From contig OZ116698.1 in assembly GCA_964199315.1 (NCBI GenBank), positions 5,084,001 to 5,148,000 on the forward strand: a stretch of DNA of 64,000 nt. Direction: 5' to 3'. The notes beneath the pieces were generated by a model. It was given only the letters and a program-made list of their open reading frames with translations. It had not been told where the DNA came from and did no database searches. Source of the DNA: Orbicella franksi (Eukaryota). Position numbers and translations under genes: made by a program. Below, in pieces: positions 11,747 to 12,088 of this stretch (position 1 is the stretch's first letter; each line of letters begins with the position of its first letter).

Positions 11747-12088
11747 AGCGCCTGTTTTTATCAAGAACTTTTTGGTTTCTTCGTTTTGATTACACGCACT
11801 GAAGTCTTTGGTCTCTTTCCCTAGTCCTGGTCGCCTTTGTTGGATGTACTGAGCTATTATATTTTTAACCAGTCTTTCATTTCCCGCTTTTAGTGCATGT
11901 TAATGTTTTAAACCGTGTCTATTGTCTTTTGTCTTTTTATGGTGGGGCGGGGTTCGACTACCTGGCAAAGTTGGCGAGCCAGCCTCTTATGAGGGTGCTC
12001 CCCCTCCTTGGTGGTACTTTTTCATCTATGCCTCTATGGTCGGTGGACATTGCACTGCGTCCATCGTACCGTCTTAAATACAAAAAAA

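Follow-up and report, generated by a model that had tools for sequence, protein, structure and literature searches.

A covarying RNA junction with a copy of the tRNA T-arm in the 3' untranslated regions of coral LINEs inserted at U1 genes

The 64,000-nt stretch of Orbicella franksi DNA analysed here (contig OZ116698.1, positions 5,084,001 to 5,148,000, called the window below, with positions counted from its first letter) contains a cluster of U1, U2 and 5S genes identified with Rfam and interleaved with copies of long interspersed nuclear elements (LINEs), all of them on the + strand. An initial annotation had noticed, in the 3' untranslated regions (3'UTRs) of one family B copy (B1) and two family C copies (C1 and C2), a short block with T-loop and D-loop-like motifs, and had proposed a covarying cloverleaf RNA, recognised by the protein of open reading frame 2 (ORF2) or otherwise tRNA-like, or a DNA site for TFIIIC. 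The question raised by this locus is whether the block is kept as RNA or as DNA, what it folds into, and what it could do for the element that carries it. Comparison of coral copies shows that the block, hereafter the module, is under selection as a structure of the sense-strand RNA, in the 3'UTRs of a stony coral LINE lineage whose proteins combine apurinic endonuclease (APE), reverse transcriptase (RT) and zf-RVT domains. We regard it as a real, conserved and covarying RNA junction that includes a tRNA T-arm copy and that is probably a variant of the recognition structures of LINE 3'UTRs, its function being inferred.

The motif was recovered at all three sites on the + strand, and the 69-nt blocks of B1, C1 and C2 align ungapped and in register, in agreement with the identical segment lengths noticed before. 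Within the window the 24-nt core GGTTCGATTCCCTGGCGAAGTTGG matches only these three sites, with 0-3 mismatches, and zero matches were obtained in shuffled sequence. The B and C 3'UTRs align poorly overall and the module block is their best-conserved stretch, the identity to C2 being 69% in the module and 53-54% in the flanks, for a shuffled baseline of 46%. A covariance model run with filters off found no further module copies in the window, either in family A or in the elements associated with U2 and 5S genes.

The three copies alone could not settle the fold, because single-sequence folding of the window copies was unremarkable (z -0.6 to -2.5) and the minimum free energy (MFE) folds of B1, C1 and C2 disagree among themselves. 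The copy set analysed comprises 26 sequences (25 distinct), all from coral DNA and including Oculina patagonica, which were gathered by a metagenome pattern scan, by protein-led look-ups and with the covariance model. The scan used a 22-nt degenerate core and returned 30 loci, of which 24 were coral relatives and 6 were chance matches; the latter (L003, L004, L007, L015, L019 and L025) lie in unrelated, bacterial-looking sequence and were discarded. Twenty of the 26 copies come from the search pattern, in which both the T-loop and the D-loop-like stretch are fixed. The protein-led look-ups were independent of the DNA motif and led to the Oculina locus L001, to L032, L034 and L037, and to L035, L038 and L039, relatives of the window proteins being found in Stylophora pistillata, Acropora muricata and O. 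patagonica. The sequencing runs that contain the window DNA are also coral samples. The starting proteins for L032, L034 and L037 share 47-50% identity with the C-terminus of C1 ORF2. These three loci and the Oculina locus, whose ORF2 C-termini are 47-56% identical to that of C1, contain the module, and so do L038 and L039, which were reached through other listed proteins. Loci L033 and L036 were left out as their sequence ends too soon after the stop codon, and three proteins (P0003, P0015 and P0045) led to no usable DNA. The covariance model, a check that had been suggested with the annotation, was built on 19 distinct copies; it detects the module in every protein-led locus but L035 and revealed an extra divergent copy in L027 (149-208).

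Covariation across this set supports a fold of the sense strand, as had been claimed from three copies. In the final alignment 93.1% of the cells are paired; sliding the 3' partners by 1-3 columns lowers this figure to 50-62%. Changes on both sides of a pair occur in 13 of 21 pairs, and none of 500 shuffles reached the observed values. RNAalifold, applied to an independent plain MAFFT alignment, returned four helices (P1, P2, P3 and P4) and a mini-arm, and did not return the middle arm of the initial cloverleaf. The revised fold lies 0.6-6 kcal/mol from the MFE of each sequence in 22 of 23 copies, the outlier being L005, and it is energetically better than the cloverleaf, again in 22 of 23. 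G.U pairs are common on the + strand, for example in 9 of 25 copies at the second pair of P2, and the covariance model gives the minus strand at most 11.8 bits. The strand that folds is therefore that of the LINE sense RNA, and a minus-strand structure was rejected. The proposal of a structured RNA with a tRNA-like T-arm finds support in covariation and in the G.U tolerance of the + strand; the cloverleaf drawn for it was wrong in its middle arm.

The module is closed by P1, an 8-bp stem with both-side changes in 6 of 8 pairs among the 25 distinct copies (GGUAGG/CCUACC, GGUGAGG/CCUCACC, GGGGAGG/CCUUCCU and others), so that the closing stems do pair despite their differences. It is followed by P2, the 5-bp arm with the UUCGA(C/U)U loop, whose early description also holds: both-side changes are seen in 3 of 5 pairs when the divergent families are included, and the stem CAGGG/CCCUG is replaced by CGAGG/CCUCG in the divergent L027 copy and by UGGGG/CCCCA in L039. 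In these two copies compensation extends even into the T-stem. A G-C pair closes the loop in 20 of 25 copies, and the loop is UUCGAYU except in the most divergent ones. P2 has the 5 bp, the closing pair equivalent to G53-C61 and the 7-nt UUCRANY loop of a tRNA T-arm. Among the copies found independently of the pattern, the loop is UUCGAYU or UUCGAUC in L001, L038, L039 and the divergent L027 copy, and it drifts in the others, to UUCGGUC in L034, to CUCAUUA in L032, and by a 2-nt deletion in L037. A CGA..UUGG stretch is kept in all of them.

The D-loop-like strand that follows is nearly invariant, also in the loci found through proteins. It contains GC[GAAGUUG]GC, in which two pairs can be formed in 22 of 22 copies; A-U replaces G-C in the divergent L027 copy and, by direct reading, in L039 too, and RNAalifold places here a 2-bp helix (G-C/C-G) closing GAAGUUG. 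This evidence for a mini-arm is suggestive, and the segment may be either single-stranded or a 2-bp mini-arm. The P3 helix (3-4 bp) replaces a part of the cloverleaf that had been left single-stranded: the last four bases of GUG(C/U)UC are its 3' strand and pair with G(A/G)(A/G)C. It occurs as GAAC/GUUC, GGAC/GUCC, GAGC/GCUC (in one copy each of families B and C), GGGC/GCCC, GUGC/GCAC and GUUC/GGAC, with pair 2 changed on both sides in 14 of 25 copies and pair 3 in 11 of 25. The small hairpin P4, noticed as CUAC/GUAG versus CCUC/GAGG, was found with further variants (CUCC/GGAG, CUGC/GUGG and others) and with both-side changes at pair 2 in 6 of 25 copies and at pair 3 in 10 of 25, but it is optional across families. 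It is carried by families B and C and by the Oculina copy and is absent from six copies (L032, L034, L037, L038, L039 and the divergent L027 copy), in which P3 is capped by U(G/U)GU and the total is 58-60 nt. P4 looks like an insertion into the U(G/U)GU tetraloop of this minimal form. Over all forms the module measures 58-70 nt, and its conserved core comprises P1, the T-arm, GC[GAAGUUG]GC and P3. P1, P2, the mini-arm and P3 follow one another without linker nucleotides; the module is therefore a perfect four-way junction if the mini-arm forms, and a three-way junction with an 11-nt strand if it does not.

The middle arm of the initial cloverleaf, AGUU-GGCG-AACU, did not survive this comparison. 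It shows zero both-side changes, breaks in 2 of 3 divergent variants and gives the worse energy in 22 of 23 copies. Although it is 88.6% paired, it is so only through U.G and U-A pairs, with one-sided purine changes opposite U, and it overlaps P3. In 20 of 26 copies its 5' strand was set by the search pattern, and in these it had little chance to vary. The positions of the helices in the window copies are collected in Table 1.

Table 1. The module, its parts and neighbouring features in the window
Feature	Position	Strand	Remarks
Module C2, whole junction from P1 5' to P1 3'	41304..41372	+	covariance model 96.4 bits; all helices intact; best-preserved window copy
C2 P1, 5' strand AAGGUAGG	41304..41311	+	partner 41365-41372
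C2 P2, tRNA T-arm look-alike	41312..41328	+	5-bp stem CAGGG/CCCUG; 7-nt loop UUCGAUU
C2 D-loop-like strand GCGAAGUUGGC	41329..41339	+	possible 2-bp mini-arm GC[GAAGUUG]GC
C2 long arm	41340..41364	+	P3 GAAC/GUUC (41340-41343/41361-41364); internal loop UGG/GU
C2 P4 hairpin within long arm	41347-41358	+	CUAC-AUUU-GUAG
C2 P1, 3' strand CCUGCCUU	41365..41372	+	
Module C1	17590..17658	+	covariance model 90.2 bits
C1 P1	17590-17597/17651-17658		
C1 T-arm	17598-17614		loop-closing pair broken (A.C)
C1 D-loop-like strand	17615-17625		
C1 P3/P4 arm	17626-17650		
Module B1	11940..12008	+	covariance model 84.4 bits
B1 P1	11940-11947/12001-12008		6/8 paired
B1 T-arm	11948-11964		loop-closing pair G.A
B1 D-loop-like strand GCAAAGUUGGC	11965-11975	+	
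B1 P3	11976-11979/11997-12000	+	GAGC/GCUC
B1 P4	11983-11994	+	CCUC-UUAU-GAGG
B1 3'UTR	11511..12089	+	from stop of zf-RVT ORF to A-run; U1-like ACTTGCCTGACGC next
C1 3'UTR	17327..17774	+	module end 116 nt before A-run end
C2 3'UTR	41113..41488	+	~16 nt of the U1 start (from nt 3) next, then a further element
AUUGCAC-loop hairpin, B1	12041-12066		between module and A-run
AUUGCAC-loop hairpin, C1	17715-17757		between module and A-run
AUUGCAC-loop hairpin, C2	41430-41470		between module and A-run
Full-length U1 small nuclear RNA (snRNA) gene	17772..17935	+	adjoins C1 3' end; target gene; Rfam RF00003, 137.4 bits
Intact U1 comparison copy	44926-45089		Rfam

The resemblance to tRNA is limited in extent yet too good for chance. 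No known Rfam family was found for the module at the gathering threshold, and at E<=10 the search, one of the checks suggested earlier, returned T-arm fragments of mascRNA and tmRNA and a chance match to DUF3800-XI. This tRNA-like match covers only the 17-nt T-arm and scores 15.3 bits versus a gathering score of 42.5. By direct reading of C1 and C2, the 13 nt after the T-arm, UGGCGAAGUUGGC, agree with tRNA positions 8-20 wherever a base is specified; the chance of so good an A-box match at any one given site was roughly estimated at 1 in 65,000. The likeness could derive from a captured and rearranged tRNA-like sequence or from convergence.

Several fuller forms of tRNA identity were tried and rejected. 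The module is not a tRNA gene: neither the window nor any of 20 loci yielded a gene with ARAGORN, and over the C2 3'UTR no match to the tRNA model of Rfam was obtained even at E<=10. The order of a tRNA cloverleaf was rejected too, as the module runs P1, T-arm, D-like strand, P3, without a free acceptor end. A tRNA-style D-stem, GCGA/UGGC, is 70.6% paired, its third pair being unpaired in 20 of 22 copies; where a tRNA D-arm has a 3-4-bp stem (10-13/22-25), the module has a 2-bp mini-stem at most. Only 4-5 bp could be drawn by eye between the D-loop-like stretch and the 5' end of U1, or for a mimic of a 5' splice site, and these readings were set aside. Compared with tRNA (RF00005) and permuted tRNA genes, the module shares the canonical T-arm, the UGGCGAAGUUGGC fit, the number of arms (at most four) and the size; it differs in its order of closing stem, T-arm, D-like strand and long arm, and in lacking an anticodon loop. 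A circularly permuted tRNA would need an acceptor hairpin between its T and D parts, which the module does not have, and a simple circular permutation would fit only with a lost acceptor hairpin and an opened variable arm. The T-arm look-alike within a long transcript other than tRNA, and its location in a 3' region, are shared with mascRNA and MEN-beta of MALAT1 and NEAT1 (RF01684), with the tRNA-like domain of tmRNA and with the 3' tRNA-like and T-shaped structures of plant viruses, but only the 17-nt T-arm matches them, and no sign of RNase P or RNase Z processing or of a 3'-terminal position was seen.

Two further sequences near these elements resemble tRNA. They lie just past LINE 3' ends, at L008:1673-1745 (+) and around L001 4340-4410 (-), and the first scores 31.4 bits on the Rfam tRNA model and is not called by ARAGORN. 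Both are probably short interspersed nuclear elements (SINEs) derived from tRNA, or pseudogenes. In family C a G-run tract (GGGG TTTT GGG TTT GGG) lies directly 5' of the module, at 17562-17578 and 41276-41292, and similar tracts are present in the relatives L002 and L008; an RNA G-quadruplex could arise from this tract and the GG runs close to it.

Where the 3' junction could be read, the elements that carry the module are LINEs of the APE, RT and zf-RVT kind. Pfam identifies Exo_endo_phos, RVT_1 and zf-RVT domains in the LINE ORF fragments of the window, and B1, C1 and C2 have a common 3' ending made of an AUUGCAC-loop hairpin, a CUUAAAUA-type sequence, a short A-run and then U1 from about nt 3. 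The module lies some 160-920 nt past the stop of the last ORF and, in the window copies, 80-116 nt before the A-run. Every module-bearing element with a readable 3' junction shows the AUUGCAC hairpin and the A-run followed by U1 from nt 3. Such junctions were read in more than 10 loci, with a full U1 downstream in L016, L018, L021 and L023 and the U1 5' end in L027, L034, L037, L038 and L039. These junctions indicate that the module-bearing LINEs insert at U1 nucleotide 2/3 with a duplication of ~16-18 bp, and as far as sampled the module is specific to U1-targeting coral LINEs. The AUUGCAC loop is also the loop of stem-loop 2 of U1, as seen in the adjacent U1 genes (cattgcact at ~17836 and ~44990).

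Locus L027 consists of two tandem elements separated by ACTTACCTGACGCGGGAG. The first has an intact ORF2 of 1177 amino acids with Exo_endo_phos, RVT_1 and zf-RVT domains (Pfam). The second (149-1760, minus strand) has only a 400-amino-acid zinc-knuckle (zf-CCHC) ORF1 and no ORF2, and it keeps, at the U1 site, a complete 3'UTR with a P4-less module, the AUUGCAC hairpin and the A-run; it looks like an internally deleted, non-autonomous derivative. LINEs placed head to tail at one U1 site were also seen in the window (12089-12110 and 41488-41505), as in L027 (1745-1780, minus strand): past each 3' end there is a piece of U1 (nt 3 to ~20), either ACTTACCTGACGCGGGAG or a decayed form of it, to which the next element is joined immediately by its 5' end. 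ACTTACCTGACGCGGGAG reads as the 16-18-bp target duplication of U1 nt 3-20, hit again as a target. The Oculina element has a long 3'UTR, with ~920 nt ahead of the module, and contains three copies (L001:3090-3760) of a repeat unit of ~240-300 nt that includes TTAATTGGTTGGTCCTCGTGGACGTTGTCGGAAG. The depth of DNA contigs over 40300-41486 of the window is ~10 over the ORF2 end and 100-237 over the 3'UTR, with the peak on the module; since the 3'UTR depth is 10-20 times the ORF depth, this peak fits many 5'-truncated or tail-only copies together with conservation across families.

The reading that we prefer, at about even odds, is that the module acts in cis on the LINE RNA, in the recognition of the 3'UTR template by the ORF2 protein or ribonucleoprotein (RNP) of the element. 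The ORF2 protein or RNP would select and position its own RNA through this 3'UTR signature for target-primed reverse transcription at U1. The module would work jointly with the AUUGCAC-loop hairpin and the A-run located 80-116 nt downstream in the window copies, a 'stringent' mode of 3' recognition. The T-arm and D-loop likeness may then reflect descent from a captured tRNA-like sequence, or a mimicry that adds a host tRNA-binding partner. In support of such a handle, the fold and the fixed loop bases are kept across the U1-targeting families while the flanks are near random identity. Recognition by ORF2, which had been among the first suggestions, fits the placement, this conservation and the retention of the module in the derivative that lacks ORF2.

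Several observations weigh against a role in template recognition. In the window copies 80-116 nt separate the module from the 3' end downstream, whereas the best-known recognition hairpins are at the very end. Locus L035 (2990-3010) is a U1-inserted copy from which the module was lost by a clean deletion of ~100 nt between GAGUGUG and GACCC, its sisters keeping it (L039:2795-2897 and L038:2950-3047); if L035 transposed after the deletion, the module is dispensable. Retention in the ORF1-only derivative is weak evidence, because an internal deletion keeps any segment of the 3'UTR. The invariance of the T-loop and of the D-loop-like stretch draws its independent support from the six copies found otherwise, since the pattern fixed both in the other 20 of 26. 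The contigs of one metatranscriptome over 41251-41486 are thin and could be DNA, and two poly(A) RNA-seq runs of the species label gave zero reads, which is no test in samples where the presence of the organism was not established.

A less probable explanation, though one to be taken seriously, is that the module mimics a host RNA, the stack of P1 and P2 with a true T-loop and the D-loop-like stretch reproducing the elbow, or upper half, of a tRNA. The module might recruit a host tRNA-binding protein such as a pseudouridine synthase of the TruB/Pus4 type, La or exportin-t, or the ribosome, as do viral tRNA-shaped 3' translation enhancers, and might thereby stabilise, export or translate a LINE transcript driven by an snRNA promoter and without a long poly(A) tail. 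This would be compatible with an RNP handle, as an alternative or an addition. The canonical T-arm described above (5 bp, closed by G-C in 20 of 25 copies, with the loop UUCGAYU), the fit of UGGCGAAGUUGGC to tRNA positions 8-20, and the fact that the sole Rfam signals are T-arms of tRNA-like RNAs all favour it. So does the copy of the U1 stem-loop 2 loop AUUGCAC in the same 3'UTR, given which mimicry of host small RNAs would be a recurring theme. However, the order of the arms is not that of tRNA, there is no free acceptor end, and the T-loop drifts in the most divergent copies (UUCGGUC, CUCAUUA and the 2-nt deletion). A tRNA-type contact with the T-loop also seems sterically doubtful because, with P3 formed, the D-loop-like GG sits one nucleotide from the junction. 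An unlikely but more specific version is a rearranged tRNA mimic, in which a four-way junction would stack P1 on the T-arm and the mini-arm on P3, giving an L-shape or a T-arm minihelix that recruits a factor handling tRNA. If this were true, the 3'UTR would be, with its mimic of U1 stem-loop 2, a patchwork of decoys of host small RNAs.

We consider it very unlikely that the block acts as DNA, its B-box (GGTTCGAYTCC) being an 'extra TFIIIC' (ETC) site that acts on the snRNA/5S array, or on the inserted element, through chromatin or at the level of transcription. The boxes themselves are present as had been read: in C2 a B-box (41315-41325) stands directly before an A-box-like stretch (41327-41338). 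The consensus GGTTCGANTCC is exact in C2 and has one mismatch each in B1 and C1, with the A-box-like TRGCNNARYYGG adjacent, and the elements sit among 5S genes, transcribed by RNA polymerase III (pol III), and snRNA genes. A type-2 promoter has its A box upstream, 30-60 bp or more apart and in the same orientation, whereas here the B-box abuts and precedes the A-box-like stretch; because the order is reversed and the spacing absent, there is no type-2 promoter on either strand, and a canonical TFIIIC/pol III promoter is not supported. What the module has in common with type-2 promoters and ETC sites is GGTTCGANTCC and TRGCNNARYYGG; it departs from them in this order and spacing and in a selection that acts on RNA pairing, as the compensatory changes in P1, P3, P4 and the T-stem outside the B-box core and the strand-specific G.U tolerance indicate. 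A second exact B-box, GGTTCGAATCC, was found on the + strand at 61743-61753, inside an ORF of 564 amino acids and far from the LINE 3'UTRs. It is probably due to chance, with 6 matches observed at <=1 mismatch versus 2.6 expected.

About as improbable is a processing signal, cleaved by RNase P or RNase Z or by itself, that would cut the LINE transcript or free a small RNA, as mascRNA is freed from MALAT1. A T-arm with a stacked helix is the shape of a minimal RNase P or RNase Z substrate, and the module has this shape and a weak match to the mascRNA T-arm; against this, the inserted copies hold the module plus 80-116 nt of downstream sequence, so that the template of reverse transcription was not cut at the module, no ribozyme family was matched in Rfam, and no read ends were seen in RNA data that are uninformative. 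Least probable of all is a functionless relic of a captured tRNA or a fragment of a tRNA-derived SINE hitch-hiking in the 3'UTR, a reading suggested by the tRNA-like sequence and by the SINE-like sequences near the elements (L008:1673-1745 and the minus strand of L001 at ~4340-4410) but opposed by the conservation of the module, against randomised flanks, in families whose ORF2 C-termini are 47-56% identical, and by repeated compensatory changes in four helices.

A role of the module in template recognition would bear on how LINEs choose their RNA. Conserved 3'UTR structures are the means by which many of them do so, and few such structures are defined beyond a handful of model elements. The module offers a compact RNA domain of 58-70 nt, backed by covariation, for studying template recognition by site-specific L1/Tx1-like elements, and a possible case of retrotransposon tRNA mimicry beside an apparent U1 stem-loop mimic. 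Its covariance model could serve as a practical marker with which U1-targeting LINEs, truncated copies included, are annotated in coral genomes. Targeted gene insertion is a further field in which site-specific LINEs attract interest as templates, and there a defined cis-RNA requirement would help. In the literature searched, we found no description of a tRNA-like 3'UTR module or structure in the UTRs of non-LTR (long terminal repeat) retrotransposons, and no LINE 3'UTR structure with a tRNA T-arm copy.

Other LINEs, such as eel UnaL2 with its stem-loop, Bombyx SART1 and R2, and monocot L1 with its hairpin, are established cases of stringent 3'UTR recognition with covarying stems (PMC3747384). 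The module differs from these in being a multi-arm junction with a T-arm copy instead of a simple terminal hairpin, and in that a second hairpin, with the AUUGCAC loop, separates it from the A-run; the RT is here a putative binding partner. Like them, it is a conserved RNA structure of a non-LTR 3'UTR, with compensatory stems and fixed loop and junction bases, and it may also resemble them in being shared with non-autonomous elements, one ORF1-only derivative at a U1 site having kept it. It lies in the 3'UTR of the sense RNA, and its conservation, with compensatory changes, takes in Oculina, families B and C and the families that lack P4. Tx1-clade LINEs target U2, 5S and other repeats, and include a cnidarian family that targets U2 (PMC4494074). 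The coral elements are L1/Tx1-like in their domain architecture and site-specific insertion. With Keno in U2 and Mutsu in 5S (PMC4494074) they share the combination of APE, RT and zf-RVT and a precise, same-orientation insertion into a multicopy small-RNA gene, but their target is U1 nucleotide 2/3, with a duplication of ~16-18 bp.

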